The notes under the pieces are model-generated. The model was not told the DNA's origin. It saw only the letters and a program-made list of their open reading frames with translations, and ran no database searches. From assembly GCA_965649825.1 (NCBI GenBank), contig OZ287705.1, positions 507,978 to 571,977 of the forward strand: a stretch of DNA of 64,000 bases. Direction: 5' to 3'. Both the position numbers and the translations under genes were made by a program. This stretch comes from Penicillus capitatus. Its lineage: Eukaryota; Plantae; Chlorophyta. This document shows, piece after piece, positions 1 to 40,259 of this stretch (within the stretch, counting starts at the first letter, position 1; each line of letters begins with the position of its first letter).

Positions 1-2210
1 TTCTCTCCTGACGACACATCCGCCAACTCCGTCCCGTTGAAACTCTCGGTAACGCTCATTGCTTTGACCTTTCATTGAATGGCGGTTCTGTGCCCCGTGA
101 ACAAAACATAGACAACACGCGCGATGGAGGTAAAGAGACACGCGTTTGTTGTTCCGTGCGAGAGCGACTGTATCGCTTTGTAGGAATCGACAACGCCGAG
201 ACCTCCAACCGAAAGCTTGCGCAAGTAAACGCACTGCAGTTACCAGGGCGAAACATTAGCGTGCTGTTTGTGAGCAGGCCAGACGTATTACAGGCAACGC
301 GGTAGAATGACGCGGCAATAACATAGCGCTGTATATTGTTGTTACTGCCTTAGGCCGGAGAGTTTTTGGCAATGACAGAAGCTAGCCGAGACGCTAACCG
401 GGTTATCGGTGTTGACGGATGGACCCAACTTCACGAGGAAACTAAGAATGGAAACATAACATACGTAACGGTGAGCGCGTCTGCTCTAATTCCCACTTCG
501 AACAGTTTCAAACGTAGAGCTTGATCAATACCGGCTCGAAGCCCGACTACAAGGAAGCGAAAGACGGTCGCACTGCACTTCACGTTGCAATAATACACGG
601 ACACAGTGAAATCGTAGAGGTCCGTCGACGCAATATTCTCTGTTTTGACGAATGGTCGTTGAGCAGATCCTCCTTAAAAACGAAGCAAACGTCGATGCGT
701 TGGACAAATTCCGCTCTACTCCAATTCTGTATGCAGCAATGTACGGATGCACAAAATGCGCAGAGGTCCGCTGCGACAACCTTCTCTGTCTTGTCTGTGT
801 TGTGATGAATGGTCGTTGAGTAGATCCTCCTCGAATACAAACCAAACATCAACGCTCCTGACTTATCCAACTCTGCTCCACTTCATTATGCAGTACGGTA
901 TGAAGCCACTGAAATCGTAAAGGTCTGTCGACCCAACCTTCTCTGTCTTTTCTGTGTTGTGATGAATGGTTGTCGAATAGATGCTCCTTGAACACGACGC
1001 AAACGTCAACCCTCTTGACGGATATCACAGGGCCCCACTTCATTATGCAGCAAGTTGGGGGCGCACTGAAATCGTAAAGGTCCGCCGACACATCATTCTC
1101 TGTTTTGTGGCAAATGGCCGTTGAGTAGATTTTCCTTGAACACTGTGAAAGAATGGCGCAATTCTGACAGAACAGTGATGGGACGTCTCTGTAATGGTGA
1201 CCTTTCTGTCACTTAGCGCTTGTCGCGTCTTTGGCCGTGTGACGTAACCGTCACTGCTGAATCGCAAACAAGTCGTGATGACTGGGAGTGAATTCTTGAG
1301 AAGTTCCTAAGAAACTTCTAGAAGTTCATACTGAATTACCTGGTTTCAGTGGGAACCTCATTGCGAACTCACTCTTAGAATTCAGCTGATTTTCCTGTCG
1401 TCACATCAGGGTCGGAGTATTTAAGCAAGGCTTTGACACAGAAAAACACCTTTCGATTAAACATCAAAGTTTACACTTGTGTTCTGAATCGCATACAATC
1501 TGTCAAAACATTCGCTGTCTATTCCCAAAGTTGCAACAAGTCGCTCTTTGCTGCAAAGCTGTTTGTGTGGCCTCCGAACTTTCGCCCATCCTCATCCAAT
1601 TTCAAGACTTCCGCTGCGTTTGTGAGATGAGCCAACACGGGAACGACTCCGGCAACAATGCTCCACCTCCACCTCCCGGCCAAGGCGAGGGAGAAATACG
1701 TGTCGTCCAAGCCGAGGACGTCGAGAGGGAGGTACAGGAAGAGGGTGCCGGAGGGAGTTCTTCACAAACACCACGCAGACATCGAGGTGAGGGATGATGA
1801 GGGACAAACTCCACTACATCACTCAGCAACTTGGGGGTACACTAGAATAATAAAGGTCCGCCGACTCAAACCCTACTGTTTTGTGACTAATGGCCGTTGA
1901 GTAGATGCTCTTTGAACACAACGCAAACACCGAGGCGAAGACCAAAGAAGGATGGACTCCACTTCATCTTACAGCAAAGAATGCTCAATATGAAAGCGCA
2001 AAGGTACCTACCTCGCCGGATTTGCTCGGATCATGGGTATACTTGCTTATGACACAGGTGCTAGTTGACAATGGTGCATCCAAGTTGGCTAAGGACGACA
2101 AAGGTCATACTCCTTATGACGTCATATGTGATGATTCAGAAAGAATTTGTTTTGCGTTAAAACTTCGACCTCCGCTCAAGAGCCTGTTGAAACCGACCGA
2201 AAAGAAATAA
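1..2210 (+). pseudogene. ANK-1: secreted-type ankyrin-repeat gene (5' end outside window), disrupted by a solo-LTR-like insertion
   Basis: Exons rebuilt at GT..AG: exon-2 remnant 1-48 (FSPDDTSANSVPLKLS), linker micro-exons, N-cap exon ending GVDGWTQLHEETKNGNITYVT, and 99-102 nt repeat exons 518-619, 667-765, 824-922, 981-1079, 1129-1855 (split by the insertion) and 1905-2003. Terminal exon 2058-2210 (VLVDNGASK...TPYDVICDDSERIC...TEKK*). Homologous exon-for-exon to ANK-A/B/C. The first micro-exon acceptor reads CAA where ANK-B has CAG. Confidence 0.85.
1144..1766. mobile_element. Solo LTR-like insertion (623 bp) with 5-bp target-site duplication
   Basis: Begins TGTGAAAGAA and ends TTCTTCACA (TG...CA, imperfect terminal inverted repeat). 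Flanked by AACAC at 1139-1143 and 1767-1771. Removing the insert plus one AACAC restores a perfect 33-aa ankyrin exon [37 protein letters not shown]-like TATTTAA at 1418-1424. Confidence 0.85.
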
Positions 2211-4084
2211 AGCGCGTGATCCATGACATTTCTAGCATACACCTGCTGCTGTCTATTCTTGGTTTATTATCCACGTGCCAGACATCTCTAATTCGATTGT
2301 ACCTGTTGTTATGTGACCACTCCAGCTGTTAGCTTTGCATGAGATTGTTTAATAATTAAAGTGTGTTACTGTGCGAGGCAAAGTTACGCGCATCTCGTAT
2401 CGAGTGCGACAAACTGCCGCGTGTTTGCGAAAATCTGTTCTCGGATGACATGGTTTTGTTTCTGTTGGCTCTTCTGGACGCCGTAAGTTAGCACAGGTTA
2501 CGACAGTGTTCATCTGATCGGCCACTCTGTATTGCAAGATCATTCCAGTGATTGGATTTAGTCAAACGAGTTACCTGGCAAGGGTCTCGCTGTCTGTGCC
2601 GACAGGCAGGAGATGTGATCGTATTCACCTCTGACATAGAGCGCACTAGGACGCAGAGTTCAGAGGGGGAGGCTATAGACAACGCTTATCCACCGTGACG
2701 CTAGACAACGCCGAACGTCTCTAGAAGACTAGTTTGCGGGTGACGCTGCGCCCCTCTCTACGCTACACAGTCACTACGAAGTTTGTTACATCTGTGTGCT
2801 GTCGACAGTGCTTTAGCGTAATCCACTTGATGATAGATACACCGCGAATAAACGCAATGCAAACCGCACTGCTTTCCTAACCTCGCGGAAACAACGCTGT
2901 CTGCAGAACGTGTCGATCCTCCTGCTTGACATAAAGGTACAACGACCTCGACAGATTGCCGAGATTCGCACAGCATATCACCTGCTGGCATTAGATGTAC
3001 ATAGCACGAATAATGACGCTGGCAAGTGCAAAACATTGACAGGGATGTGCAAGTAAGGTAGGTGTCTGGTTCGGCCAGCGCGGACAGTGCGCAGAAGAAC
3101 TACAAGTTCATGTCTGGCGCAGAGAAAACGCGCTCTCTTGTCTGAGGTACGTGGCGCCAGACAGCGTTCATATTCGACCGCGTTGCTGGAGAGAGGCGCA
3201 AACGTCATCGCGACGTGCGCAGAGTAGAAGCACCAACAGACTGCAGCATTTCTGTGGCCTTCCGAGACACGAGTCCTTTCTGTATGTACCTGTTAAATCG
3301 ACATAGCGCGCATCTCTTTGCGCGCGTCCGCCATCGAGCGCTCTTCTGTCGATCATGTAAAAACGAAACACGCAGGCGCGTTGCCAAGACGCTTACAGCG
3401 CAAAGGATAATAACAACGCGCAACAGGCAAAGGATGCCTGAGTACAGGCGCAAAAGATTCAACGCCACATCGCAAAACGGTCTGACTTTTATATCCCGGC
3501 TGCTCAGTAAACAGCAATCGTCGAGCCGCCTCGATCCGAATACGTTTCCGTGCCATTCTCAGATCAATTGAGGCAGCGAGGCACCAGACTTTCCGAATGG
3601 CCTGGTGCCAATGCAACGCGACAAGCATATAGATTCTGTCGACCACTTCCGCTTGTGTCGTGTTCGGTTCGCCGTTGTCATGTTTTGTCTGCATCCCGAT
3701 ACAAGTAAAAACTCTCTCGCCATCGCAGGTCTTCTTGTCGTCTTCAGCGGAATTTAATCCCACTCGACGCGCATTTCGGCACAGATAACGACACCCTCGC
3801 CAGGCAACACAGCTGACGACGTCACATGATAGGAGTCGTCTTGCGATACAGAGTAACTCATCGAGCGAACAGACTCTTAGTTCGTGGGTGCCTTACCGCG
3901 TTCAAAGGCCAGTAGACACAAGACCATCATCCAGTCACGACAGTTCTTTACCAAAACTGAGTCGTCTGTCTACAGCAGCCGCATCCGATGCGAAACGCGC
4001 GTAACCATGCGTCGCACAACAAACTTCAATCATTAAACACTGTTCAGCGTTGCAAGTTGAGATGGAGCTTTACGTACAGCACCA

Positions 4085-7000
4085 TCAAATTGGGGAACTA
4101 GAACATGTCTGGCATGTAGATGACAGACCAAGAATATACAGCAGGATTGTGCATGATAGAAACGCCATGAATCTTGCACTCTCCCAATAAGGATACAAGA
4201 GAAACTCGAGCTTAGCTCGAGTACTGATAGAGCACGAAACAAAACCATCAGAGCATATGCGATCGTATGGAGTGCGACCACTGTCGTCTTCAGCCAACTT
4301 GGACGCACCGCCAGCAAGTAGTACCTGTACCATATGACAACTGTACCCAAGATTCAAACGATTCTGTGGTGTACCTCTACGACTTCAACCACACCGTAAT
4401 CTGCCGCCCAATGAAGTGGAGTAGAGCCATACGTGGTTTTGGCTTCGATGTTTGCGCCACGGTCAAGCAGGACCTTCGACAGACAACGATTCTTCATAGA
4501 CAGCGAACATTGCGTCGACTAACCTTTATGGCTTCGACTTGTTTTTTCGCTACTGCTTGATGAAGTGGAGTAGTCTCTCCTTTGTTTTTGGATTCGATAT
4601 TCGCGCCACGGTCAAGGAGGACCTTTGTTGACCACCATTCTTCACGAGACGGCGAAGATTGCGTTGACAAACCTTTATGACGTCGACGCATCCTCCCATT
4701 GCTGCTTGATGAAGTGGAGTAGTCTCTCCTTTGTTTTTGGATTCGATGTTCGCACCACGGTCAAGGAGAACCTTCGACGTCGGCCAATCGTCAGAAAAGG
4801 TTGATGACTGCGTCTTCTGACCTTTACGATTCCAACCTGGTCATGATATGCTGCCAAATGAAGTGGAGTTGCGTTGCTTGAGCTTTTTGCCTCGATATCT
4901 GCGCCTCGGTCAAGAAGGACCTTCGGCAGACGACCATTCGTCAGAAAAGGTTGATAACTGTGTCGACAGACCTTTACGGCTTCGACTTCTCCGTACGCTG
5001 CCGCTAAATGAAGTGGAGTTGAGCCGTATTTATCTGTCTTGGCCTTGATATCCGCAGCGCGGTCAAGCAAAACCTTCGTTGACGAAAATTCTGCACGACA
5101 CAGAAGGTTGCGTCTACGGACCTTTATGGCTTCAACGCATCCTTCCTTTGCAGCACAATGAAGTGGAGTAGAGCCTCCTTCCTTTTTGGCTTCGATGTTC
5201 GCGCCACGGTCTAGGAGGACCTTAATTGACGAGAATTCTGCACGACACAGCGAAGGTTGCGTCTACGGACCTTTATGACTTCAACGCATCCTTCTTTTGC
5301 AGCATAATGAAGTGGAGTTGCGCCGCTTGAGCTTTTGGCCTCGATATCTGCGCCTAGGTCGAGAAGGACCTTTGGCAGACGACCATTCGTCAGAAAAGGT
5401 TGATAACTGCGTCGACAGACCTTTACGGCTTTGACTTCTCCCCACTCTGCCGCCCAATGAAGTGGAGTTGAGCCGTATTTATCGGTCTTGGCGTTGATAT
5501 CCGCACCGCGGTGAAGCAAGACCTTCGTTGACGAGAATTCTGCACGACACAGCGAAGGTTGCGTCTACGGACCTTTATGGCTTCAACGCATCCTTCGTTT
5601 GCAGCATAATGAAGTGGAGTTGCGCCGCTTGAGCTTTTTGCCTCGATATCTGCGCCTAGGTCAAGAAGAACCTTCGGCAGACGACCATTCGTCAGAAAAG
5701 GTTGATAACTGTGTCGACAGACCTTTACGGCTTCGACTTCTCCCCACGCTGCCGCCCAATGAAGTGGAGTTGCGCCGTGTTTATCTGTCTTGGCCTTTAT
5801 ATCCGCACCGCGGTCAAGCAAGACCTTCGTTGACGAGAATTCTGCACGACACAGCAAAGGTTGCGTCTACGGACCTTTATGACTTCAACGCATCCTTCCT
5901 TTGCAGCATAATGAAGTGGAGTTGCGCCGCTTGAGCTTTTTGCCTCGATATCTGCGCCTAGGTCGAGAAGGACCTTTGGCAGACGACCATTCGTCAGAAA
6001 AGGTTGATAACTGCGTCGACAGACCTTTACGGCTTCGACTTCTCCCCACTCTGCCGCCCAATGAAGTGGAGTTGCCCCGTATATATCTGTCTTGGCCTTT
6101 ATATCCGCGCCACAGTCAAGCAAGACCTTCGGCAGACGACCATTCGTCAGAAAAGGTTGATAACTGTGTCGACAGACCTTTACGGCTTCGACTTCTCCCC
6201 ACGCTGCCGCCCAATGAAGTGGAGTTGCGCCGTGTTTATCTGTCTTGGCCTTTATATCCGCACCGCGGTCAAGCAAGACCTTCGTTGACGAGAATTCTGC
6301 ACGACACAGCGAAGGTTGCGTCTACGGACCTTTATGACTTCAACGCATCCTTCCTTTGCAGCATAATGAAGTGGAGTTGCGCCGCTTGAGCTTTTTGCCT
6401 CGATATCTGCGCCTAGGTCGAGAAGGACCTTTGGCAGACGACCATTCGTCAGAAAAGGTTGATAACTGCGTCGACAGACCTTTACGGCTTCGACTTCTCC
6501 CCACTCTGCCGCCCAATGAAGTGGAGTTGCCCCGTATTTATCTTCCTTAGCCTCGATATCCGCACCGCGGTCAAGCAAGACCTTCGAGGTCGACCATTCG
6601 TCAGAAAACATGAACAAGTGCGTCGACAGACCTTCACGGCTTCAACTTTTCCGTACGCTGCTGCTTGATGGAGTGGAGTCGAGCTGTAGTCATCTGTCTT
6701 GGCTTCGATATCCGCGCCACGGTCAAGCATGACCTTCGTTGAAGAGAGTTTTGCACGACACAGCAAAGACTGAGCCGGTGGACCTTTATGGCTTCAACAT
6801 TTCCGGTCGCTGCTGCTTGATGAAGTGGAGTCCAGCCGCTATTGTCTGCAGTTTCGACGTCTGCGAGCTGGTAAAGGTGAAACTGTGTCCACAGTTGTGA
6901 CCATGGAAATCTGATTTGGTTTGCACACACCTTCTCGAGTCCATTACTTCCATCCGCAGCCCTCTTATGAAGTCGAGCCTGCCTGTCGATTCCGACAGCC

Positions 7001-7516
7001 TTATTGTCTGTTCTTTGCCCAAGGGCGCCCTATGTCAGTAAAAACGATCCGAGGCGTTGTGTTACAGACGCTCTATTTTACGTGGTAGGTTTTCTGAATT
7101 CCGGTTTCTCCCTGCACAAGAACATCGCGCTGGTTTCTCGACGACGCTAACCGCACCTCAGTCGTTCTTCGGATCTTTACGTCTGCAGCTTCTTTGTGTT
7201 TCGTTCCTGGAATCAAGACAGCTGCGCGCACAAGGAACAACACATGCGGGCCTTGTTACCCCGACGCGCATAGTCGCCGCTCTGAGGATGGGCATCGGAG
7301 CCGCCATTTAGTCAAGATGCCAGTACAACACGAGTCCTACCTCGGGTCTGGAGAAGACGGAGTTGGCGAACGCGTCGTCTGTAAGGAAGTCTGCTCAGCA
7401 GAAGACACTGCCGTCGACACAGATGCATGACCGACGACGGTACCGCGGCTGCCCGTCGACTCGAGCGGCGCAAAGAGCAGAAGGCAGAGGCACGTGTGTA
7501 GAACGGTGCACTTCAT
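4085..7516 (-). CDS. ANK-A: signal peptide + N-cap + 17 internal ankyrin-repeat exons + C-cap with hydrophobic tail (about 24 exons, ~750 aa)
   Basis: ATG 7516 (MKCTVLHTCLCLLLFAPLESTGSR). Exons 7516-7444 and 7390-7341, micro-exons 7281-7248, 7206-7181 and 7111-7082, N-cap 7029-6931, then 17 exons of 99/102 nt from 6882 to 4375, each one ankyrin repeat (VLLDRGADIEAK..GxTPLHxAAxxGxVEAVK). Terminal exon 4324-4085. All repeat introns are phase 0 and 48-51 nt. Confidence 0.9.
4474..6783 (-). repeat. Tandem exon+intron cassette array (~150-bp units, 302-bp higher-order dimer)
   Basis: Two near-identical intron types (50-nt GTCCGTAGACGCAACC...CAACGAAG; 51-nt GTCTGTCGAC..AGTTATCAACC...TGCC(G/A)AAG) recur with 99- and 102-nt exons. 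Exons 6428-6330, 5973-5875 and 5369-5271 encode identical peptides. Confidence 0.9.
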
Positions 7517-7849
7517 GTTTTTGCGCGAGCGTCAGAGGCACTGCGAAGAATCGTTCAGTCGTGTTGAAACGCGAGGTTTGGAACAAAACACACACGACGA
7601 TTCAGATTCAGAATTTGAATTTGAATTTGTAGGCTGTCCGCGCTGTCACGGGAATCTACAGGACATCGCCTGCATTCCTTCAAGGCTATTTGCGGAAGTA
7701 ACCTAACGGCAGCAAGCCTCGGGCGTCCGGTTTCTGAGGAGGCGGAGCGCGGAAAGGCGACCTGACGGCGTCCAAGCTTGCCTGAGGCCCTTCGCCGTTG
7801 TTCGTACTTGCATCCGCTGACCGTCCGCAGTTCGTCGTCTGACTGCGAC

Positions 7850-11763: not shown

Positions 11764-12859
11764 ATGAAACGCGCTGTTCTTTGCGCTTGGCTCTGTTTCC
11801 TTCTTCCACGCTCGACACTCGGCAGTCATGGTCGTGTCGGTTAAACCATGTCGTCCCTCAGTCGAGCTTGTCGTTGCGCGAAGGTGCCCAGCTGTCAGCG
11901 GAAGGGAACGCTGGGGACAGTCGCTTGCGCAACACAGCCGCCAAGAGAAACGACGACAACGCCGAACAGGTGAAACAAACAACCGTAGACCGAGCGCGCC
12001 GACAAAGGCTGCCGACGCAGTTGCAGCTCGAGCACAACTCCGACTACCGTAAGGCTCCGGTCTTCGCAACGAAACCACTTCATGTGGCAGCCGCACTGGG
12101 AGAAGCAGACCAGGTGAAGGTGCGCTAAGTAACATGCGTGAGAAGGTTCGCTGGCGATGCTCTTCTGCGCAGCGTCTTCTCGATCGGGGCGCGGACATCG
12201 ACGAGACAGAAGAGAACGGTTTTACAGCACTCCACTGCGCAGTGATGATTCCCTCAGAAGGACGCGCGGCGACTGTCGAAGCGAGAGCGCATACCGTGAA
12301 AGCAAACGCCGATACGTGATCGCCCTGTCGCTTGTGATTGCGATCGCAGGTTCTGCTCGACGAAGGAGCGAACATCGAAGCGAAAGACGAGAAGGGCATG
12401 ACTCCGTTGCACCTTGCAGCCGCCACAGGATGCGTGGAGGTTATTCAGGTGAGGCATTCAGTCTACTTTACAGCCAAGGGACGCGAGATGCCTTTGCAGA
12501 TTCTGCTCGATCACGGCGCGTCCGAGAATGTAAATGACAGGTCGGGGAGCAGCATCCCATACGACCTTGTGTATCTCTTTGTGGACGAGGAGGATTCCGG
12601 AAACGAGAGGTCTGTGGCCGACTCCACGTCGAATTCTGAAGAGGTTCGCAGTAACGACGATGGCAAGCACCGCCCGTGGTGGTGCATGGCACTGATCATC
12701 GGTTCTATTGGTTTCGTTGTTCTGATCGCCGTTCTTCTGACGGTCACGGCGTGCTGCGTTATTCATGGACCATCGATGAGCATTGACACAACCAACGGTC
12801 CATCGCTGAGCTTTGACACGCCCAACCACCCGTTTTATCCAACACGGTCCAAAATCTGA
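11764..12859 (+). CDS. ANK-D: type I membrane protein (signal peptide, ~4 ankyrin repeats, one TM helix, short tail)
   Basis: ATG 11764 (MKRAVLCAWLCFLLPRSTLGS). Repeat exons RLLDRGADID..TALHCAV and VLLDEGANIEAKDEKGMTPLHLAAATG. GC donor at 12281. The last exon carries WWCMALIIGSIGFVVLIAVLLTVTACCVI, then about 30 aa and TGA at 12859. Confidence 0.85.
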
Positions 12860-14257: not shown

Positions 14258-17042
14258 TCATGCGTTCTTCGTAGAAGGAGACAACAAGGACTCGAGTTCA
14301 GATACAAGCGAATCATAACAGTCACTCTCGAGACATATGACGTCATAGGGAGTATGACCGTCTTTGTCCTTGACCGATTTGGATGCGCCGTTATCAACCA
14401 GTGCCTGTGACATATTGGACAACTACATCCAGGATCAGAGAGAATGTGCGACGTACGGTTACGGTATAAGCATCTCCTTCCTTTGCTGCATAATGAAGTG
14501 GAGTCTGTCCTCTGTTGTCCGTCGCTTCGATGTCTGCGCTCTCTTGGAGGAGATCCTACGACGGCGGTGGTCGTTATTCTTACGAGACGGCGAGGATTGT
14601 ATTAACGGACTTCTACGGTTTGAACGTTTCCGTGCAGCGCTGCCCTATGAAGCGGAGTTTGCCCTTCGTCATTCTTTGCCTCGATATCTGCGCCCTTCTT
14701 AATGAGGAACTACGCCGACAGTCATTGCTCTCGTGAGACGGCGAATGTTGCAACGACGGCGGACCTTTGCGATGTCCTCTTTGCCTTCGTCTGCTGCCAC
14801 ATGAAGCGGGGTCCATAAGTTATCATCCGTCGCATCGACCTCTGCGCCTTTTTGAAGGAGAATCTACGGCGGCGGCGGTCGTTATTCTTGCGAGACGGCG
14901 AAGGTTGCATTAACGGACTTCTACGGTTTGAACGTCACCGAATCGTGCCGCTGCCTTGTGTAGCGGAGTTTGTCCTTTAACATCCTCTGCAGCGATATCT
15001 GCGCCCTCTCGAAGGAGAATCTACGCCGACGGTTATAACTCTCGCGAGACGGCGAGGGCTGTCAACGAACCTTCACGGATTCAGATTCTCTATAATATGC
15101 TGCCAAATGAAGTGCAGTCCATCCCTCATTGTCTGACGCCTTAATGTCAGCGCCTTCTTTAAGGAGAACCTACGCCGACGACCGTTCGTCGCGGGACAGT
15201 AAAGGATTGCGTCAGCAGACCTCCATGAATTCGACGGGGTGGTATATCGCTGCCTTGTGAAGCGAAGTTTTTCCTTCATCGTCCTTTGCATCGATATATG
15301 CGCCTTTTTGAAGAAGAATCTACGCCGACGGTTATAACTCTCGCGAGACGGCGAAGGTTGCGTCAAAGAACTCTTGCGGCTTCGGCGTCTCCGTACAGTG
15401 CGGCCCTTTGAAGTGGAGTCCATCCCTCATTGTCCGTCGCCTCAATATCTGCGCCTTCTTGAAGGAGAATCTACGCCGACGGTCATTATTCTCTCAGGAC
15501 GGCGAGAATTGCATTTACGGACCTTTACGGCGTCGTTTTCTCCGTACCTTGCTGCAAGATGAAGTGGAGTCCATCCATCTTTGTCCTTCGCCTCAATGTC
15601 TGCGCCTTCTTTAAGGAGGATCTACGCAGATGGTCGATATTCTCGCGAGACGGCGAATGTTGCAACGACGGACCTTTGCGATGCCCGTTTTGCCGACCTC
15701 TACTGCCACATGAAGCGGCGTCATTCCAGCAACATCCTTCGCCTCAATATCTGCGCCTTCTTGAAGGAGAATCTACTCCGGTGACTGTTCGTCACGGGAC
15801 GGTAAAGGACTGCGTTAGCAGACCTTTAGAGATTCGACCATTTCGAACAGCGCTGCAATATGAAGCGGGGTCCATCCGAATATATCCTTCGCCTCCGTAT
15901 CGGCGCCTCCTTGAATGAGAAGCTACGCCGACGGTCATTACTCTCGTGAGAAAACGAATGCTGCATCTAAGAACTTTTGCTGGTTCGATGTTTCCGTACA
16001 GTGCTACCCAATGAAGCGGAGTCCTTTCTTCCTTATCCTTCGCCTCAACGTCTGCGCCTTCTTGAAGGAGAATCTGCACCGATGACTGTTCGTCACGGGA
16101 CGGCAAGGGACTGCGTTAGCAGACCGCAGACCTTTAGAGATTCGACGCTTTCGTACAGTGCTGCAATATAAAGCGGAGTCCATCCCGCATTATCCTTCGC
16201 CTCAATGTCTGCGCCTTCCTTAAGGAGGATCTACGCCGACAGTCGTTATTCCGGCGAGAAGGGAAAAGTTGCAAGGGTTGACCTTTATGATTTCGACATC
16301 TCCAAACTCTGCAGCTGCGTGAAGCGGAGTCCGTCCACCTTTGTCCTTGGCCTCGATGTCCGCGCCTTGGTCAAGAAGATCCTGCGTTCGGAGCTGTCCA
16401 ACTTGGGAATTCGAGTAGAGTTATCCACACCTTCACGCGTTGTACATCCCCACTCCTAGCTGCCTCATGAAGGGGAGTCCCTCCGTCGTCCACTGAAAGC
16501 CATCCGTTAATAACGACAGTCCAGTTGGCTTTTCCTTGATCATGTGCGCTCTTACACAGTAACAGCGTTTCGTCGCGTCGCGTTGTTGACGCAGCACTCT
16601 ACCTGGTAAGGCTTCCGAGTAACTTCGCCGCTCTGCACAAAACCATGACGCCAGTTTCCGCCGCGGGTTAGTGTACGTAGTTTGTTTACTTGTTTGAACT
16701 TCTGGTCCGAGGCTTCGGAGTTGTCGATTCCTACGAAGCACGACGACCGAGCATGCGCGCAACAGCAAACACGTGTCTCGTTACCTCCGTTGCGCGTTCC
16801 GTCAATGTTCTGTAGGTGGCCCATCGGAGCCGCCATTTAGTAAAATCGCAGAGCAACAGGAGCCTTACCGAGAATCTTAACGGGAAGGAGTCGACGGACG
16901 CGTCGTCGTGAGGGAAGTCTGCGGCGCAGCAAGGCATCACCGTCGACACAGATGCATGGACGACGGTACCGCGGCTGCTTGTTGACGGGCGCGGACCAAG
17001 GAGCAGAAGGCAGAGCCACAAGCTGAAGGCAACCAGCTTCAT
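14258..17042 (-). CDS. ANK-B: secreted ankyrin-repeat protein (signal peptide, micro-exon linker, N-cap + 13 internal repeat exons, Cys-containing C-cap, no anchor)
   Basis: ATG 17042 ([24 protein letters not shown]). Repeat exons of 99-102 nt (e.g. 16381-16283, 16230-16132) with consensus [27 protein letters not shown], separated by ~50-58 nt phase-0 introns that mostly end CGTAG. Terminal exon [27 protein letters not shown] (TGA 14260-14258). Confidence 0.9.
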
Positions 17043-21239: not shown

Positions 21240-22290
21240 TCAACGTTGCCCGTCCGATGCGCGATCATTCCTTGACGCCGTGCACCAGCAGCGGAAGATC
21301 GCGTAACAGATGATGATCTCCGTTATTATCCAGAAACCGGTGAGGACGCCGTCGTCATCGGCAGCCAGCAGAGACAGGAGAACCGACTGGGTATCTCCGG
21401 AGCAATCCGCCTCGCTGTAGGCACACACATTGTCGTACGGCGTCCTCCCATAGAAGTCCTCCGCATCCTTGGATGCGCCCGCCTCGAGCAGAGCCTGTGA
21501 TGGTCGCCTTCTCCGCTCAGCACCGGACAGCAGAACGAACGTCTCACCAGAACAATCTCCACGCGTCCAGTTGCCGCTGCGTAATGAAGCGGCGTCAGTC
21601 CTTTGCGATCTGTCGCTTCAACGTCTGCCCCAACGCCGAGCAGCATCTCCAAGACATGTGCATTTGGCATGTCCTCTCACAAATCGGCGCTCACCTTCAC
21701 CGCGTCCGTACTCCCAGACACGATCGCGACGTGGAGCGGCGTCATCCGATCGCCGTCCGTTGCTTCGATATTGGCGCCGGCATCGAGCAGAACCTGCAGA
21801 AGGCGGTTACACTCGGGAAACCATCTCGCACTTGGAGACGGACCTGCACCACCTCCGCGTCTCCAGACGCTGCTGCATCAAAGAGAGGCGTCCTTCCCGA
21901 GTCGTCCGTCGCTTCGATGTTGGCTCCCTCGTCGAGCAGGGCCTTCATCGCAGGAATCACTTTCCCAACGCCGCGCGCTCACGCGTCGTCACTTGCTTTC
22001 ACGTCCTTCAGGCTTCCATCCCGAGCCGCCTCGTGAAGCTTTGTCCTTAGGCCGTTCTTGAGCACAGGGTGCTTCGCACCTCCCTCGAAGGGGAGCTGCG
22101 TTCGCAGCTGTTGGAGGAAACCCTCATCCGACTCGCCGTTCTGCTCTTCCGCGGACAGCCTTGGCCCTTCTACGTCGACAAGCTTGGTCAAGTCGTGGGA
22201 TGGCTTTTCGGCTTCACCCTGACTGGCGGATGCCGAGCGTAGGACGAGAAGGAACAGAAGCCACGCGCGGAGAACGGCACGCTTGGTCAT
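21240..22290 (-). CDS. ANK-E: type I membrane protein (signal peptide, ~5 ankyrin repeats, TM helix, short tail)
   Basis: ATG 22290 (MTKRAVLRAWLLFLLVLRSASA). Exons ALLDEGANIEATDDSGRTPLFDAA.., VLLDAGANIE..TPLHVAI.., MLLGVGADVE..TPLHYAA... Terminal exon TPYDNVCAYSEADC...GVLTGFWIITEIIICYAIFRCWC...GQR*. GC donor at 21996. Confidence 0.85.
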
Positions 22291-24335: not shown

Positions 24336-24529
24336 GAAACGAGTCGATCGCTTCCAGTCTCGACGAGTCCAAGCCAATAGACAACATAAAGGGAAATCTA
24401 TTTCATGTCGGCCCCTGCGTCGACGTTTGCACTAAACTCGATGAGAACTTGCAGGAGCGGCGATTTTTCGAAGAACCCTTCACTCTCGTTGGAGACTCGC
24501 AGGAACCATTACTAAGATCTCTTACTTGA

Positions 24530-25525
24530 CTGCGACGAGTAACAGTTCCCGTCCTTTGTCGTCGCGCGCTTCGATGTTCGCCTCCTCTTCGAGCAGAACC
24601 TGTAAAGGCTTCTTCTGCGCGCAAAAAGTCCATCTGTCCAAGTGGAGGCTTGCTTTCGCCATTTCGATGTCCGGGATCGCCGTTGCGTGATGCAGCGCCG
24701 TCCAGCCTCTCTCGTCAGCCGCCTCAGTTTTTGCGCCTCCGCGGATAGGACCTCCACAAGCGACACTCCTTGCGAGCATCCCCCATACCCGAGATTCACT
24801 TCGCATTCTTCGTCCGCCCAGCAAACACTGCTTGGTGAAGCGGCGTCTGTACTTGTCTATTGATTGCTTCGATGTTCTCGCTCCAATCAAGAAGAACCTG
24901 GACGGACCGCGTCTTGAACGGACGGAACTCTTCACATCAGCGCGAGACTTACGGTCACTATCTCCGTGTCTTCTCTCCGCGCCGCAAACATGAGTGGCGT
25001 CTGTCCGCTGTCGTCCGCAGCCTCGACATCGACGCCCCCTTCGAGCAAAGCCTGAGAAACCGACAACGCAACGGAACTCCCCGTACGGTTCACGACGACG
25101 AATTTTCACCACTCTTGCGCCCCCGTGAACTGCTGCGCAGTGCAGTGGCGTCGGGCCCTTCTCGTCTGTCACCTCAATGTCAGCATCTGTGAAGAGCAGA
25201 ACCTGTGCGGGCAGTCACGTCATCGTCAACGACCCTGGCTGCACATTCAAACACACCTTTACATCTTCCACTCTTCCTTCTCATGACACCTAGTACAGCA
25301 GCGTCGCTCCATCACCGACGCGCACGGCGAGGTTGGCCTCCAGGAACTGAGAAGGCAGTCTGCTTCGGCGATTCTACGTTGCGGTTCGCACCTGGTAGTC
25401 TCCGCAAAAGCAGCACGCTCGACGGCGTGCGAAATGCTTCAACCAGTACGGCCACGACTGCCAAATTTCGGCGCTGGAAGGAGAAGGATACACAGACACG
25501 CCGCGTCAAGCAGAGGGCGTTTCAT
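24530..25525 (-). pseudogene. ANK-F: decayed signal-peptide ankyrin-repeat paralog
   Basis: ATG 25525 (MKRPLLDAACLCILLLPAPKFGSR) and four internal repeat exons. Lesions: in-frame TAG (25292-25290) and TGA (25283-25281) in the N-cap exon, AT instead of GT at the donor 25103, and a 1-nt loss at the donor near 24799. No typical TPYD..C C-cap. Confidence 0.7.
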
Positions 25526-31100: not shown

Positions 31101-34100
31101 AAGCAGAGTTCGACGAGGAGATGAGGCGCATATCAAGACATCTCGATCGGGGACATCAACGGTGGGAGGGGCCGAGCCCTCACGCACTGATGCACGTCGA
31201 AGGTCTGTCCTTAAACGACACCCTTCTGCTTCGATGGTACTTGAGTGCAGAGGGAAGTGGAGAAGATAATGGCTTTGCTTACACTTTCATTCTGAACAAG
31301 TACAAGTACTTCGCCACGTACGAGGTCCGTTCTGTCAAATTATCATATCTGCTTCGTGATCTGTATCTTCTGTCTAACAGTGTAAAGTGCCTCGAAGTTT
31401 TCTTCTGGAGAGGGAGAGATTCTTTAGTACTAATACGTTCGATATGGATGGCAGAGAATGGTTAGATTAACAATCGTCGACGACCTGCCTGAAGACAGTT
31501 TGTGTTTTCAGGCTTGTGACGATTCGACACGGGTACAGTGGACACCTGGCTGCTTACTTGTGGAACAAAGGCGTCACTCGGGCAACCGCTCACTACTGCT
31601 TTACCGTCGTCAGCAAGAAACGTGGCAACAGTGTATCCAGAGGTGATGGATCCACTGGAGATGGTAGTCATTCCAAAGACTGTTATTCTATTCGAAGGAG
31701 GCTTCGCAGAGATCTTTCCCGCTGTCTGCAAGGACAATCAAGGGTTCTCCGACCTCTGCGCCGCTGCGATAGTGAACGATCCGACTGAGGGATTCCTGGA
31801 AGGGATAAAGAAAGATTTCTTCCTCTTGCGCGCAGAGATCAGACTCAAGCTCCAAGACGACGAACGCTGGACAGTTTCCGTCAAAAGAAAGACAGCCACA
31901 TGCACCGTACGTTTGACTTCTTCTTCGAAGCACAACGATGTTTGACATTTGCAGTGGAAGCTGAAGGGACTGCCAAGTCTGTGTCCAACAATATTGTCAT
32001 CTGAGTTCTTCAATATTAGAGAAACCAAGTGGTGTAGCGATATCTTCTGGCTCTAACCTCGTCCAGCTGCTTGATGTGCGTGTGCCTTTGCAGGAGGCTG
32101 GCACTAGGGCCGAAGGGAAACAGCTCGAACTCTCACAACACCAGTCTTTACCTCTTCAATTGTCAAGATCACTCTGTATGCGTGAGGACTGAGTTCCGCG
32201 CCTTAAATCACAAATTGGCCAAGAAGACTTCTGCAGACGAAGTTAGAAGTCAGCATGCTCTTCATTCAATAAAAGCTCGTCCATAAACTTGTTCTACAGA
32301 ATTTACCGAGATCATCGAAGGGTACAGAATGTCAGGCTTCTCTAAGTTTCTGACAGACGACCAGTTGACGGACGAATCACTCGGATTCCTGAAAAAGGGC
32401 TGGATTACATTGACTGCGACAGTCACCCTCCTCGATGTCGATCAGGTGCCGCAGTGCGGGTATTGCCGATTAGACCCAACGTGCTCCGTGCGTCACGGCA
32501 ACACGTAAGACACTCCCTCTTTCTTCCACAATCCACTGATGCTCCACTGCACTGCCAGAAAACACCTGTGCTACTGCACCAAATGCGCCAAGAAGCTGAA
32601 GGAGTTGCTGCTTGATGGGCAGGAGATCAAGTGCCCTGTGTGTGAGCAGTTAGTGGAGAGAGTCATCATGAACGACGGTCCCTACTTCGAAAGATGTCCC
32701 ACATGCCTCATCGACCCCATATGTGCCGTCAGACACGGCAACACGTAGTGCTGTCACCATCGCGCGTTGTGTCGCATGTCTGGCTGTATCAGGAAACACC
32801 TCTGCTACTGCACGGAATGTGGCAAAGAGCTTTCCAGGAGACTGAGGGGTAGAGTCATTCAGGACTGCGTCGTCAGAACGGCGTGCCCAAAGAAAATATC
32901 GCCCGTGGAGAAGACGACATCGAAATGTCACGTGTGCGGTGATGACAATCCAACCTGCTCAGTGCTGCACAGATCCACGTAGGATTGACTACATAAACAC
33001 TGATAAACTTGTTGCGTACGATGATGTTCAGGGAGCACGTTTGCTACTGCCAGCTCTGTGCATGCAAAGAGTTTATGAAGGCGCTTGCGAAGAAGTGCAA
33101 GCTCAAGTGCCCAGTGTGTCAGAGAGAGGCGGACCGCATCGTCGTCAAGAATGCTGCTGACGACGAGCGAGTCCCCGCTCTGCGCAGATGCAAAAGCGCA
33201 GTGATCGTCCAGAAGAAACTGGATGAGGAGATCCTTGACATGCATAGAGCCGTGGTGCCAGCACAGCAAGTGTCATCGAGTCAGACTGTTGCTGAAGGCG
33301 GACGGAGTAAACAGAAGGATTTAGCGGTGTCCAGATATAACGAAACGATGTCTGCTATCAAGAAGCTACAGGACGGGACTTTCTTTATCCACACAGCCAA
33401 AGTCCCAAGTCAGCAAGAGTCACCGAGTCAGACAGTTGCCGACAGAAAACAATACACGGAGAGGCGTTTAACGCTGGGCAGATACATGAAAGCGTTGTCT
33501 GCTTCCAAGAAGCTAGTCGATGTGATTTTGGACTACTGTGGGGTCGAGGTCCAACTTCAGCGAGAGTCATCGAGCCTGACCGTCGCGGAAGGCAGTCAAG
33601 ACAAAGAGACATACTCAGTGATGAAGTTGTGCGAGGAAGCAATGTCCACTCTAGAAGAAATGTCAGAGGCGTTGTTGGGCAACTGCGACGTCGAGATCCC
33701 AGACCACCAAGAGTCAATGAGTCAGATGGCCGCTGAAGGCAAACAAGACAAGCAGGCGCAGACGGAAGACTCAAAGAAGGGCACATACGAAAAAACAAAG
33801 GCTGCTTTCGGTAAGCTGTTTGAGGCTATCTCGGCCTCCACTGAAGTCGGCACTCCAGTCCAACAGACGCCATCCGATCAGACTGTCATCGAGGACACAT
33901 GGACTCTGCGACATGCCCCGCCGCTACATAGGTGTGAGAGTGCAACGTTCTCCTGGGATAAACAATGTCCGTTCTGCCCTTCGACACAAGACCTCGATCA
34001 TGAAAGCAGGTGTGTCTTTATTCGTTTGGCGAATTGTGTAGCACTGCGGCAGTTGCTGCAACAGGCATCTGTGTTACTGCATTAAGAGCAACAAGAAGAT

Positions 34101-38237: not shown

Positions 38238-40259
38238 TCATGCGCTCTTCGCAGAGGGAGACAACAAGGACTCGAGTTCAGATCGAACACTCTCAGGACA
38301 AGATGCATAAAGATATTCACAGATGCAATCAAACGGAGTCTGACCAGAGAGGTCCTTAACCGACTTGGACGCGCCACCATTAATCAGTGCCTGTGCAATT
38401 GAACAACTAATTCCAGGATCTAAGCAAATCTGCAGGTACCTTTACGGTTTCAATCCTAGCGTGATCTGCTGCCAGATGGAGAGGCGACCTGCCGGCTGCG
38501 TTTTTGGCATCGATGTTCGCGTCACGGACAAGAAGGACCTTCGTTAACGATCATGCGCATTCATCATGAGACATCGAAGAGTGCATCGACGTACCTTTAT
38601 GGTCTTAAGTCTTCCGCCGCGTGCTGCCAAGTGAAGCGCACGATGTCCGTACTTGTCTTCGGCCTCGATGTCTGCGTCACCGTCAAGGAGGACCTTTGTC
38701 GACGGCCATTCTTTACGGACAGCGAAGGTTGCGTCATCGACCGACCTTTATGGCTTCGAATCTTCCGTCCTCTGCTGCCCAATGAAGTGGAGCCCTGCTG
38801 AATGTATGCTCCCTGGCCTCGGTGTCAGCGCCACGATCAAGGAGGACCTTTGTTGACGACCATTCTTTACGGACAGCGAAGGTTGCGTCGTCGACGGACC
38901 TTTACTACTTCGATTCTTCCGTCTATTGCTGCGAAATGAAGCGCACGCTGTCCGTACTTGTCTTCGGCCTCGATGTCTGCGTCACCGTCAAGGAGGACCT
39001 TTGTCGACGGCCATTCTTTACGGACAGCGAAGATTGCGTCGACGACCGACCTTAACGACTTCGCCTTTTTTTCCCCTTGCTGCCACATGAAGTGGAGGGC
39101 CGCTTAATGTATGCTCCCTGGCCTCAATATCAGCGCCACGGTTAAGGAGGACCTTTGTCGACGACCAATCTTTACGGACAGCGAAGATTGAGTCGTCGAC
39201 GGACCTTTACGACTTCGACTCCTCCGGTATCTGCTGCGAAATGAAGCGCACGCCATCCGTTCATGTCTTCGGCCTCGATGTCAGCGCCACGGTCAAGGAG
39301 GACCTTTATTGACGGTCGTTCTTTACGGACCGCGAAGGTTGCGTCGTCGACGGACCTTTACGACTTTGACTCTTCCGGCCGATGCCGCCAAAAGAAGTGG
39401 AGGACTGCGGTGTCCATAATCCTTGGCCTCGATGTTCGCGCCACCGTCCAGAAGGATCTTCGTTGACGATCCATTCACATTCATCATAAAGCATCGAAGA
39501 TTGCGGCGTCGAACGCACCTTTACGGCTTTAGCTTTTCCGGCGATTGCTGCCAAGTGAAGTGCAGTCCGGTGGTCTGAGTCCTCTCTTGCCTCGAGAGAT
39601 GCGCCTTCATCAAGCAGGTCCTAGGTTCGAAACTGTGCGACGCGGGAATTCGAGTAGACGCGCCGCCACCTTCACGTGTTTTGCTTTTCCTCTGAACGCT
39701 GCCTCATGAAGCGCGGTCCATCCGTCAACGCCGACATGTCTCTCGTGAGCTGTTCCTTTATTGAGCGCTCCCTTAGACGGTAATGACCATTTGCGGCTTT
39801 GAGACATAGAGGCTCCATTCACCTGGTAGGTTTCCAGAATTTCCACACAGCCCTGCTCAAAACATCAAGTTGTTTTTCCGCACGGGTAACCGTACCCCAG
39901 CCGTTCTTTGGATCTTTGGGTGCAAAGCTTCCTTTTGTTCGATCTCTAAACAGCGACAGCTGAGCGCACGGGGAGCAACATGCGCGTACTATCTTACCCT
40001 CATACGTGTCGTCTCCGTTCTAAGGAATTGGTCGTCGAAGTCACAGCCGCTTAGTCAAGTCGTTAGAACAGCATGTGTCCTACCTCAGATCTGAAGAAGA
40101 CGGAGTCGGCGAACGCTGCGTCTGTAACGAAGTCTGCTCAGCAGAAGACATCGCCTTCGACACAGATGCATGACCGACGACGGTACCGCGGCTGGCCCTG
40201 GACTTGAGCGGGGCGACGAGCAGAAAGCAGAGGCATGTGTGAAGAACGACGCACTTCAT
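38238..40259 (-). CDS. ANK-C: secreted ankyrin-repeat protein (signal peptide, micro-exon linker, N-cap + 8 internal repeat exons, Cys-containing C-cap)
   Basis: ATG 40259 (MKCVVLHTCLCFLLVAPLKSRASR), same 5' exon layout as ANK-A. Repeat exons VLLD(R/G)G/DADIEA.. are separated by ~52-nt introns ending AAG. Terminal exon ALINGGASK..TPFDCICEYLYASC..PSAKSA* (TGA 38240-38238). Confidence 0.9.

Follow-up and report, generated by a model that had tools for sequence, protein, structure and literature searches.

A tandemly duplicated family of ankyrin-repeat genes with a signal-peptide-like first exon in the green alga Penicillus capitatus

A cluster of seven ankyrin-repeat (ANK) genes in Penicillus capitatus probably belongs to a lineage-specific, tandem-duplicated, Bryopsidales-like family in which a signal-peptide exon precedes an ANK solenoid that would work outside the cytosol as a protein-binding scaffold. 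The genes lie within positions 1-40259 of the window, which is the whole 64,000-nt stretch of DNA analysed here. In the proposed protein plan, a putative signal peptide on its own small exon is followed by an N-terminal cap (N-cap), 2-17 repeats and a C-terminal cap (C-cap) with a cysteine pair, and then by either a short tail (ANK-1, A, B and C) or a stalk and membrane helix (ANK-D and E). The first exon would direct entry into the ER, and the ANK domain may then be secreted, exposed on the cell surface or held in the endomembrane or vacuolar lumen, where it would bind proteins on a concave surface that differs from repeat to repeat. ANK repeats are a textbook intracellular interaction module, and a conserved secretory-pathway ANK family in a photosynthetic lineage would, if true, widen the known workplaces of the fold.

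A repeat HMM built from the window found 56 ANK-repeat segments, each in its own stop-to-stop frame, in seven clusters with E-values down to 1e-22, at the places where an earlier note on this DNA had put seven paralogs. Six of these have exon models, whereas the seventh, ANK-F, is a pseudogene with stops and lost donors. The 49 internal repeat exons modelled in the six genes, of which 34 measure 99 nt and 15 measure 102 nt, are all in phase 0, which bears out the claim that one internal repeat equals one 99/102-nt phase-0 exon; the rare 108-nt repeat exons also claimed are absent from this set. The proposed repeat counts were reproduced (ANK-1, 6; ANK-A, 17; ANK-D, 2; ANK-B, 13; ANK-E, 3; ANK-C, 8), with the 4 given for ANK-F becoming 4-5 degenerate repeats, and every ANK gene has N- and C-terminal capping repeats besides. 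The inter-repeat introns are GT-AG and 47-61 nt long with two longer exceptions, one of 75 nt in ANK-D and one of 674 nt in ANK-1 that contains a 630-nt insert, and the introns of the ANK genes match in size and type those of the neighbouring RPL7 gene, which is itself closest to Caulerpa (82%). Judged by this one ribosomal protein and by a single Ostreobium homologue, the DNA looks like that of a siphonous green alga and not of a brown one. Independently of the HMM, TRF reported a tandem period of 149-154 nt, together with higher-order units 302 and 455 nt long; it also reported a true minisatellite of 49 nt adjoining the ANK arrays. Membership of the ankyrin-repeat family (PF00023 / PF12796) was judged by tandem repeats of ~33 residues with the TPLH, helix-turn-helix and beta-hairpin signature, scoring above the Pfam thresholds; spliced ANK-B exceeds these (Ank, E=6.5e-133 over 14 stretches; Ank_2, E=3.7e-114), and the best PDB matches are ankyrin-1, at the top, and DARPins. 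A signalling domain (ROC-COR, NB-ARC or kinase) was found neither in ANK-B, where Pfam gives Ank-type domains only, nor in the other ANK models, which consist of signal, ANK repeats, cap and either tail or membrane helix.

Two of the genes are on the forward strand. ANK-1 (379..2210) was recognized by HMM matches and an open spliced frame of 281 aa, and its 5' end, signal exon included, falls outside the window, bases 1-378 being homologous to intron 1 of the other ANK genes. Its N-cap (379-470) is followed by repeats at 518-619, 667-765, 824-922, 981-1079, 1754-1855 and 1905-2003 and by the C-cap in the last exon (2058-2210), with the 630-nt insert at about 1140-1774, within the intron that separates repeat 4 from repeat 5; the copy of ANK-1 at a related locus, L003, has the identical exon set with 0-2 nt differences per exon. 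ANK-D (11764..12859, ~255 aa) has a signal exon starting at 11764 with an uncertain first splice junction (donor 11830 or 11839, both phase 1), an N-cap ending at 12119, repeats at 12173-12274 and 12350-12448, and a last exon (12500-12859) that runs from the C-cap through an acidic stalk and the membrane helix WWCMALIIGSIGFVVLIAVLLTVTACCVI to a tail of 33 aa. In its homologues at L003 and L004 both the signal exon and the membrane helix are retained, alongside one additional repeat.

The remaining five are on the reverse strand. ANK-A (4085..7516; 20 exons, 697 aa under model M2) is supported by HMM, spliced frame and TRF (array periods of 149-152, 302 and 455 nt); it has its signal exon at 7516-7444, N-cap at 7007-6931, 17 repeat exons of 99 or 102 nt between 6882 and 4375 with introns of 48-51 nt, and a last exon at 4324-4085 with the C-cap and a hydrophobic tail. 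ANK-B (14258..17042; 16 exons, Pfam Ank, 535 aa under M2 or 576 aa under M1) has its signal exon at 17042-16970, N-cap at 16528-16431, 13 repeat exons between 16381 and 14457 and its last exon at 14404-14258. ANK-E (21240..22290, 281 aa) reads from signal peptide through linker and N-cap in a single open frame (22290-21997), with an alternative phase-1 donor after base 22218, and its first intron is probably GC-AG (GCAAGT); three repeats (21942-21844, 21793-21695 and 21646-21548) precede a last exon (21494-21240) with the C-cap, the hydrophobic segment VLTGFWIITEIIICYAIFRCWC and an R-rich tail. In the pseudogene ANK-F (24522..25525), a signal-like exon beginning at 25525 is followed by an N-cap exon with two in-frame stops and by degenerate repeats that have lost splice donors, the final one being truncated, while its orthologue at L002, from a different species, is intact with 11 repeats and a C-cap. 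ANK-C (38238..40259), in which TRF finds periods of 151 and 305 nt and whose 11 exons encode 369 aa under M2, has its signal exon at 40259-40187, N-cap at 39749-39670, eight repeat exons between 39620 and 38440 and its last exon at 38390-38238.

That such arrays are neutral, decaying, minisatellite-like tandem DNA and coding in appearance only is very hard to credit. The degeneracy of ANK-F, the adjoining minisatellite and a within-gene intron identity equal to that of the exons are what such DNA might be expected to show, but the spliced frames of ANK-A (697 aa), ANK-B (535 aa) and ANK-C (369 aa) stay open throughout, over 20, 16 and 11 exons (M2), which cannot be chance. Framework dN/dS is 0.2-0.5, and between copies the exons diverge by 1.9-2.5% against 2.6-6.8% for intergenic DNA, with exon conservation two to three times the intergenic level. 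The family is also kept in a second species and in Ostreobium.

The claim of a signal-peptide-like exon at the start of six genes was upheld by both pattern and conservation. All six genes whose 5' end lies inside the window begin with a hydrophobic exon of 22-25 codons and share the N-terminal pattern M-K/T-(K/R)..hydrophobic 11-16 aa..[GSA]S[RHQ]G. Signals were judged by rules of thumb (hydropathy and inspection) and by conservation, a cleavable signal being taken as a basic n-region, an h-region of 7-16 residues and a polar c-region with small residues at -3 and -1; by inspection and hydropathy, 10 of 10 homologous N-termini fit this description. Each begins with a start codon and an N-flank bearing K or R, continues into a hydrophobic core of 11-16 residues (maximum Kyte-Doolittle over 11 residues of 2.1-3.0) and has small residues ahead of [GSA]S[RHQ]G. 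Under the positive-inside rule, a positive N-flank with a short hydrophobic core is either a cleaved signal or an N-in anchor, so the ANK domain would be translocated in both cases.

Secretion of the ANK proteins is predicted, and likely. The contrary view, in which the hydrophobic exon lies outside the mature mRNA, or the proteins are retained in the ER, Golgi or vacuole, and they serve as ordinary intracellular or lumenal scaffolds, is quite unlikely, even if several observations lean its way. The first splice junction, exon 1 to exon 2, has two competing models, is ambiguous in ANK-D and may lack an intron altogether in ANK-E; there is at most one N-glycosylation sequon per mature protein, and ANK-A has many cysteines at variable positions, both atypical for extracellular proteins. 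ANK repeats are mostly cytosolic, and the secretory pathway of a giant vacuolated coenocyte feeds the vacuole too. Against this, an alignment of nine 5' regions, one of them from the other species at 65-76% nucleotide identity, shows that start codon and hydrophobic core are kept in all nine, with a conserved donor (G|GTACC) and acceptor (..aaRgaaMAG|), and that the signal exon joins the N-cap in frame in 9 of 9 despite frame-breaking indels of 1 and 5 nt between them. The GT of that donor is lost in the pseudogene ANK-F (GGC, vs GGT in the L002 orthologue), ANK-E runs from signal through N-cap in one open frame, the N-terminus of the annotated Ostreobium model is signal-like, and a KDEL/HDEL-type C-terminus occurs in no modelled member. 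A location outside the cytosol is also supported for ANK-D and ANK-E by a predicted type-I membrane layout, recognized by inspection as a signal plus a single C-terminal helix with a cytosolic tail by the positive-inside rule. ANK-D has a 29-residue C-terminal hydrophobic segment conserved in L003 and L004, and ANK-E one of 22 residues with acidic residues before it and a basic tail after it; the models of ANK-A, ANK-B, ANK-C and ANK-1 have no C-terminal membrane helix. The C-x5-8-C pair of the C-cap, which all homologues and five of the six window genes share, is consistent with a disulfide.

The locus is a very clean natural case of repeat-protein evolution, with exon and intron copied jointly. 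The unit of duplication or deletion is a repeat exon with its ~50-nt intron, about 150 nt in all and in ANK-A sometimes 300 or 450 nt; as this unit moves as a block, array length changes fast and the terminal repeats stay put. Unequal recombination or replication slippage within each gene would produce such changes. In closely related copies of the locus, with flanks 84-96% identical, ANK-A has 17, 8 or 7 repeats, ANK-B 13 or 6 and ANK-D 2 or 3, the terminal repeats being common to the copies and the middle ones turned over. A difference in array length of up to 2.4-fold (ANK-A) among near-identical locus copies makes this a tractable system for the evolution of repeat number and binding surfaces. 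The earlier note had held that exon numbers invariant among strains would speak against its reading; the counts differ between related copies, so this check does not refute it. The copies could be paralogous blocks instead of alleles, so they do not strictly show that strains differ. Gene birth by block duplication and gene death (ANK-F) are both seen in the family. The proposed origin by exon duplication and shuffling stands for duplication and loss, but not for shuffling between genes: the nearest relative is in the same gene for 36 of 38 repeat exons of ANK-A, B and C, and the arrays grow by duplication inside each gene. In ANK-A, repeats A5-A15, 11 of the 17, alternate between two types, within which most copies are 91-100% identical and certain units are identical across exon and intron, and the claim that surface positions vary in every exon fails here.

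It has been proposed that the family is a diversifying extracellular recognition repertoire, directed at pathogens, symbionts or self/non-self, built by duplication and shuffling and with its surfaces kept by positive selection. We regard this as unlikely, although not negligibly so, and an immune or recognition role as speculative. The signal exon and membrane-anchored members, the clustering, birth and death of genes and the fast-changing repeat number would suit it, as would the entropy peaks at binding-surface positions of the ANK repeat (alignment columns 16, 17, 19, 24, 27, 28 and 31). Among the most variable columns are DARPin positions 2, 3, 5, 13, 14 and 26 (2.97-3.45 bits), yet positions 10 and 16 also vary (3.26 and 3.43 bits) and position 33 does so moderately (1.97 bits), while a DARPin library has a constant framework and varies at the concave-surface positions 2, 3, 5, 13, 14, 33 and 26 alone. 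To our knowledge, all ANK repeats, intracellular ones too, combine a conserved framework with variation in the beta-turn and helix 1; this part of the earlier claim was seen as described, but as a generic property rather than as a sign of a library.

Tests of selection at the DARPin positions, defined beforehand, were divided. Three small groups of sister repeats, the ANK-A Y-type and ANK-C among them, give a surface omega estimate of ~2, from a handful of changes in non-independent pairs, and in ANK-C similarity is higher among introns (0.78) than among exons (0.72), both of which would favour a recognition repertoire. In other sister repeats omega is 0.4-0.5 (ANK-A X-type, and ANK-B with a saturated pS of 0.69) or 1.0 (ANK-E). 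Between corresponding repeats of three ANK-A copies, however, pN/pS is 0.72 at surface and 0.31 at framework positions, a value that reads as relaxed constraint rather than positive selection, and ANK-1, B and D have zero surface changes between copies. Diversifying selection would at most be hinted at by the small sister sets, and it is not seen between copies. The expansion of ANK-A by near-identical copies adds length, not diversity, and the family shows neither exon exchange between genes nor a signalling domain.

A siphonous green alga is one giant cell, which has to close its wounds and keep microbes in check with no internal cell boundaries to help. It is a long shot, but the secreted or membrane-anchored ANK solenoids of such algae could form a germline-variable extracellular recognition or adhesion repertoire, its new specificities arising as exon-intron modules of 150 nt are gained, are lost or diverge; if true, designed ankyrin binders would have an extracellular equivalent in nature. 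Should the proteins prove to bind ligands that are foreign or mating-specific, they would represent a novel type of recognition molecule in algae, and if not, the family is an ordinary though elegant lineage-specific expansion.

In Ectocarpus, candidate immune genes of the LRR-ROCO and NB-ARC-TPR types with one exon per repeat (Zambounis et al. 2012, PMC3341825; ROCO follow-up PMC11378527) share with the present family a constant-length phase-0 exon per repeat (here 49 exons of 99/102 nt), clustering, rapid birth and death, and paralogue-specific repeat numbers. They differ in lineage (brown rather than green algal), in repeat type (LRR/TPR rather than ANK) and in being intracellular, whereas the ANK proteins have a predicted signal peptide and no NB-ARC, ROC-COR or kinase domain. 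Further, the ~50-nt introns are here co-duplicated with the exons, the between-locus exon exchange of Ectocarpus is not seen (terminal repeats keep their place), and, where the Ectocarpus type is marked by positive selection on solvent-exposed repeat residues, elevated surface omega is here confined to small sets. To treat ANK proteins with a signal peptide as without precedent would go too far, as secreted ANK effector families have been described in plasmodiophorids (PMC12503489) and oomycetes (PMC11139960). These likewise have an N-terminal signal peptide followed by ANK repeats and a lineage-specific expansion, but they come from pathogens of plants and are presumed to do their work within the host's cells, unlike proteins of a photosynthetic green alga with a Cys-pair C-cap, membrane-anchored members and one repeat per exon.

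With DARPins and consensus ANK proteins, the family shares a near-consensus framework, N- and C-capping repeats and variable positions 2, 3, 5, 13, 14 and 26; positions 33, 10 and 16 depart from the DARPin scheme, natural intracellular ANK proteins show the same pattern of variation, and no evidence of the combinatorial diversity of DARPin libraries was found in the ~15 family genes seen in the window and five related loci. The membrane-binding repeats of vertebrate ANK1-3 are largely encoded by 99-nt exons, one 33-residue repeat per phase-0 exon as here, in cytoskeletal adaptors that, unlike the algal proteins, have a fixed 24 repeats, long introns and no signal peptide. Very high repeat-to-repeat identity is also known from fungal NLR-type proteins with ANK, TPR or WD repeats, where unstable repeat numbers were put down to recombination among the repeats (Dyrka et al. 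2014, PMC4986451); those proteins are cytosolic, have NACHT or NB-ARC domains and are not built of one repeat per exon, unlike the present ones.

An ANK protein of Ostreobium quekettii (CAD7700645.1; UniRef A0A8S1J0H2) aligned through the C-cap (BLASTP E=9e-24) and suggests that the family is old within the Bryopsidales. It, too, has a signal-like N-terminus and modules ending in the C-cap G.TP.D.IC...C....LE.LL. Its four ANK modules lie in one 17-kb gene model, which may represent fused tandem genes, and its exons of 225-492 nt hold whole modules, whereas those of the P. capitatus genes hold single repeats.

An HMM of the repeat, trained on window sequence, picked out 56 ankyrin-repeat (ANK) segments, which fall into seven clusters: ANK-1 (560-2006, plus strand), ANK-A (4372-6864, minus), ANK-D (12075-12451, plus), ANK-B (14457-16487, minus), ANK-E (21545-21939, minus), ANK-F (24552-25202, minus) and ANK-C (38437-39726, minus). 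Each segment occupies one stop-to-stop frame, and the frame shifts between successive segments because the repeats, every one flanked by AG directly upstream and GT directly downstream, alternate with 47-61-nt spacers carrying CTRAC-like branch sites. The spliced models of ANK-A (20 exons, 697 aa), ANK-B (16 exons, 535 aa, or 576 aa under the first model, M1, with its long first exon), ANK-C (11 exons, 369 aa), ANK-D (255 aa), ANK-E (281 aa) and ANK-1 (at least 281 aa) all have uninterrupted frames, and spliced ANK-B matched Pfam with E=6.5e-133 and 14 Ank matches. All 49 internal repeat exons are in phase 0, with lengths of 99 nt (34 exons) or 102 nt (15 exons), and TRF gives a period of 149-154 nt for the arrays; in ANK-A it also resolves larger units, one of 302 nt (94% matches) and one of 455 nt. 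The claim in the earlier note that each repeat has its own exon was borne out, and its repeat counts of 6, 17, 2, 13, 3, 4 and 8 agree with ours. Most repeats of vertebrate ankyrin genes likewise lie on single 99-nt exons. The neighboring gene for ribosomal protein L7 (RPL7) has introns of 54-68 nt, so short introns are a genome-wide property, and the window (G+C 48-61%) is eukaryotic, as its genes require short spliceosomal introns. Neither Rfam nor tRNA scanning gave a match in the window. A weak, lone ANK-like segment, LNSGADTTIENDDSLTPLCLAAKTD (E=0.049), lies at 10983-11084 on the minus strand, opposite to ANK-D, and is maybe a relic exon.

Six genes have their 5' end inside the window, and each starts with an exon encoding M-K/T-(K/R), 11-16 hydrophobic residues and a polar stretch up to [GSA]S[RHQ]G. 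In M1, which was built first, exon 1 comprised the signal and a Ser/Thr/Pro-rich linker of around 35 aa; this model was rejected, as it required phase 0 for ANK-B and ANK-1 versus phase 2 for ANK-A and ANK-C, with acceptors differing among the paralogues. Nine homologous 5' regions were aligned: ANK-A, ANK-B and ANK-C of the window, four copies that share a second contig from this sample, a single copy on a third contig, and a ninth from a different sample. The ninth, with 65-76% DNA identity, is therefore from another species. The "linker" DNA differs among these homologues by 1-nt and 5-nt indels, and a phase-1 donor in cgcG/GTACC and a phase-1 acceptor in aaRgaaMAG/ are kept in all nine, where a 73-nt signal exon is joined in frame to the N-terminal capping repeat (N-cap) exon. 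This second model, M2, was preferred because it stays in frame in every homologue despite the frame-breaking indels, and the separate signal-peptide-like exon proposed in the earlier note thereby held up, with the first exon now predicted to be a pure signal-peptide exon. The signal peptide itself is retained under either model. At the junction, the Gly codon is GGT in all functional genes checked at the nucleotide level, and GGC in the pseudogene ANK-F versus GGT in its intact orthologue of the other species. ANK-E reads open without interruption from the signal through a 50-codon linker into the N-cap; its homologue on another contig, L005, requires the first intron, and thus ANK-E may be spliced too. 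Plastid targeting through a bipartite leader, with a signal followed by a transit peptide, was also considered and was dropped given the green-algal affinity, because primary plastids do not use signal peptides; in addition, the S/T-rich "linker" is probably intronic. Intron 1 itself, around 440 nt in ANK-A (6932-7443), ANK-B (16432-16969), ANK-C (39671-40186) and the homologues on the related loci L002-L005, is about as conserved as the coding exons, both between paralogues and between species; its conserved blocks include actaaatggcggctccgatg and gtgcagg. This conservation hints at a regulatory or structured-RNA role.

The C-termini bear on where the proteins would reside. ANK-D continues from its C-terminal capping repeat (C-cap) into an acidic stalk, a 29-residue hydrophobic helix, kept in both related copies, and a 33-residue tail, while ANK-E has DDD, a 22-residue hydrophobic segment and an R-rich tail. 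Given a cleaved signal, both are predicted to be of type I, their ANK domain lying on the non-cytosolic side. The alternative is a reversed anchor that leaves the domain cytosolic; under the positive-inside rule, the basic N-flank and short hydrophobic core disfavor that orientation. A Cys pair in the C-cap (C-x5-8-C), which every homologue and five of the six window genes carry, would fit a disulfide formed in an oxidizing compartment, and no ER-retention motif was found at the C-terminus of any member. Predicted secretory targeting of the ANK proteins is, on these grounds, well supported rather than proven. In the last exon of ANK-A (at 4085-4180), AGA stands where ANK-B (14258) and ANK-C (38238) have the stop TGA, and the protein is thereby longer by around 30 residues, including a hydrophobic stretch, FMAFLSCTILLYILGL; the copy of ANK-A at the related locus L003 (P0242) likewise reads through the TGA site, and the DNA 3' of the stop is conserved among ANK-A, ANK-B and ANK-C.

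Searches for relatives placed both the window and the family. The spliced RPL7 protein is closest to that of Caulerpa lentillifera (EukProt EP00210, 82%), with Ostreobium quekettii next (69%), then further green algae and plants; a PDB search with RPL7 exon 1 did not place the organism. Over 20 kb, the window matches ERZ25074695 ctg334143, from a metagenome-type long-read assembly in ENA, at 100% identity. On few markers, mainly RPL7 and a family homologue in Ostreobium (below), the source is tentatively placed as most likely a siphonous green alga, of Bryopsidales or near that order, as opposed to a brown alga. Searches with full-length ANK-B returned mostly long, generic ANK proteins (identity at most 43%), none from the same species. 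A family-specific C-cap profile matched only short ORF calls in the two ENA assemblies ERZ25074695 and ERZ26696514, and the contigs of these calls gave five loci. L003, on a 285-kb contig of the same sample, is collinear with window positions 1-15553 at 91-96% identity; 57 kb away on that contig, L004 has a further copy of the A-D-B block and one extra family gene; and L005 has at least three further members. L002, from another sample and another species, carries an A/C-like gene with signal exon, N-cap, seven repeats and C-cap, as well as an intact ANK-F orthologue with 11 repeats. When the profile was run against 1.84 billion representative proteins, most matches were generic ANK proteins that aligned with just the first 20 profile positions, and few were full-length. 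The same search recovered CAD7700645.1 of Ostreobium quekettii, an annotated 782-aa model with the N-terminus MLRILILALVASQGVRAAW and four ANK modules, each closing with the same cap, including the Cys pair and LExLL (BLASTP E=9e-24). Its exons, of 225-492 nt, hold whole modules, and the layout of one repeat per exon is therefore specific to the lineage of the window; the design of signal, ANK domain and cap appears from this comparison to be the older of the two. At the Ostreobium locus (CAJHUC010001315.1, 3001-20007), a single gene of 17 kb is annotated, in which introns of 1-3 kb separate four near-autonomous ANK modules; it may represent tandem genes fused by the annotation pipeline.

The closest copies reveal how the arrays change. 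In ANK-A, an exon and its downstream intron have been duplicated as one unit, with A6/A9 and A7/A10 identical or one base apart over around 150 nt, and two alternating repeat types make up the 302-nt higher-order unit. ANK-A has 17 repeat exons in one copy of the locus, 8 in another and 7 in the third. The copies share two repeats at the start and three or four at the end (88-99% identity), and the middle has been turned over. ANK-B has 13 and 6 repeat exons in its copies, ANK-D 2 and 3, and ANK-1 6 in both. Exon number is not fixed among very close copies, whether the window and L003 are alleles or recent segmental duplicates. The earlier note's proposal of exon shuffling was not sustained as an exchange between genes: the nearest relative lies within the same gene for 36 of the 38 repeat exons of ANK-A, ANK-B and ANK-C, which therefore points to duplication and deletion inside each gene. 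Such events would proceed by unequal recombination or slippage, perhaps with gene conversion in addition. ANK-F is a pseudogene: its N-cap has two stops, donors have been lost, the last repeat is truncated, and the repeats number 5 versus 11 in the orthologue. Its decay shows the death side of the birth-and-death of the family.

Other repeated DNA lies among the arrays. A 630-nt insert at 1140-1774, between repeat exons 4 and 5 of ANK-1, interrupts the gene just past the start of an apparent former repeat exon, ATTTTCCTTGAACAC. Its sequence recurs with 94% identity at L005 11845-12481, inside a different ANK gene, and it is therefore a dispersed, possibly mobile, element in introns of the ANK family; neither terminal inverted repeats nor a clear target duplication was found in it. 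Between ANK-E and ANK-F (23079-24335) is a G+C-rich minisatellite of 25 copies of a 49-nt unit (89% matches), with a 350-nt higher-order unit, and its minus strand is open in several frames (ORFs of 500 and 464 aa), probably as an artefact of the repeat.

Whether the binding surface is under diversifying selection, as the earlier note had it, was judged at the positions that form the binding surface of designed ankyrin repeat proteins (DARPins). Entropy across the 49 repeats is maximal at DARPin positions 2, 3, 5, 13, 14 and 26, plus 10 and 16, a pattern that holds for ANK repeats in general and is by itself uninformative. Variable columns chosen by entropy for dN/dS were dropped as circular; the DARPin positions were set beforehand instead and the analysis repeated. 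When repeats are paired by position across the three ANK-A copies, surface codons give a pN/pS of 0.72 and framework codons 0.31, and the copies of ANK-1, ANK-B and ANK-D differ by no surface-codon changes and by 7 synonymous and 7 non-synonymous changes in the framework. Among sister repeats, in small counts from non-independent pairs, surface omega is around 2.0-2.4 in the ANK-A Y type and ANK-C types 1 and 2, and 0.5 in the ANK-A X type, 1.0 in ANK-E and 0.4 (saturated) in ANK-B. Framework omega is 0.2-0.9, and 0.2-0.5 save for the two-repeat ANK-C type 2 set. Exons diverge between copies by 1.9-2.5%, versus 2.6-6.8% for intergenic DNA. A fair reading would be purifying selection on the ANK fold with relaxed constraint at the surface, and possibly episodic positive pressure there. 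These values do not demonstrate an arms-race signature.

Together, the comparisons establish a clustered birth-and-death ANK family made of 150-nt exon-intron modules, and indicate a conserved signal exon predicted to be spliced in frame to the ANK domain, with a putative membrane helix in some members. The proteins would be translocated into the ER and serve as binding scaffolds, either soluble or anchored, on the non-cytosolic side, with array length and surface composition tuning what they bind; candidate roles include a response to wounding, assembly of wall or adhesive, recognition of microbes or gametes, and a function in the vacuole. The label of a "DARPin-like library" fits the fold and caps, but not as a name for a demonstrated function. 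The LRR and TPR genes of Ectocarpus, which are intracellular, carry signaling domains, exchange exons between loci and are under significant positive selection (PMC3341825), are alike in exon architecture and dynamics, but two defining features of that system, exon exchange between loci and a signaling domain, were looked for and not found in the ANK genes, and the surface-selection test gave the pN/pS of 0.72 and some omega values near 2 on small counts. Effector families with a signal peptide and ANK repeats occur in plasmodiophorids (PMC12503489) and oomycetes (PMC11139960), so the combination has precedent, and ANK arrays are similarly homogenized and unstable in fungal NLR-type proteins (PMC4986451). 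No publication on ANK proteins from Bryopsidales or Caulerpa came up in literature searches, nor any report of a signal peptide with ANK repeats for an alga.

The surroundings of the cluster may be rich in surface-protein genes. A large gene at 51782-56605 (minus) combines a right-handed beta-helix and repeats of the Chlamydia-PMP type with a Cys-rich region and several hydrophobic helices further on, and a second Chlamydia-PMP-type gene adjoins the related ANK cluster at L003 19262-20237. Two paralogous ORFs on the plus strand (33009-34085, 358 aa; 48360-49841, 493 aa), neither with a Pfam match, have in common a Cys-rich CPVCQREADRIVV motif and Q/E/S-rich repeats, and therefore mark a duplicated segment within the window. 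An intronless 348-aa ORF at 58249-59295 (plus) has a hydrophobic N-terminus and a Methyltransf_22 domain (E=1.3e-11); an exact sequence look-up in a public gene collection returned no record of it. Apparent GC-AG introns occur in ANK-E (GCAAGT at 21996-21943, minus) and in the RPL7 gene (57223-58177, plus; GCGAGC at 57397-57450), the latter backed by alignment, as other L7 proteins skip exactly these 18 codons.
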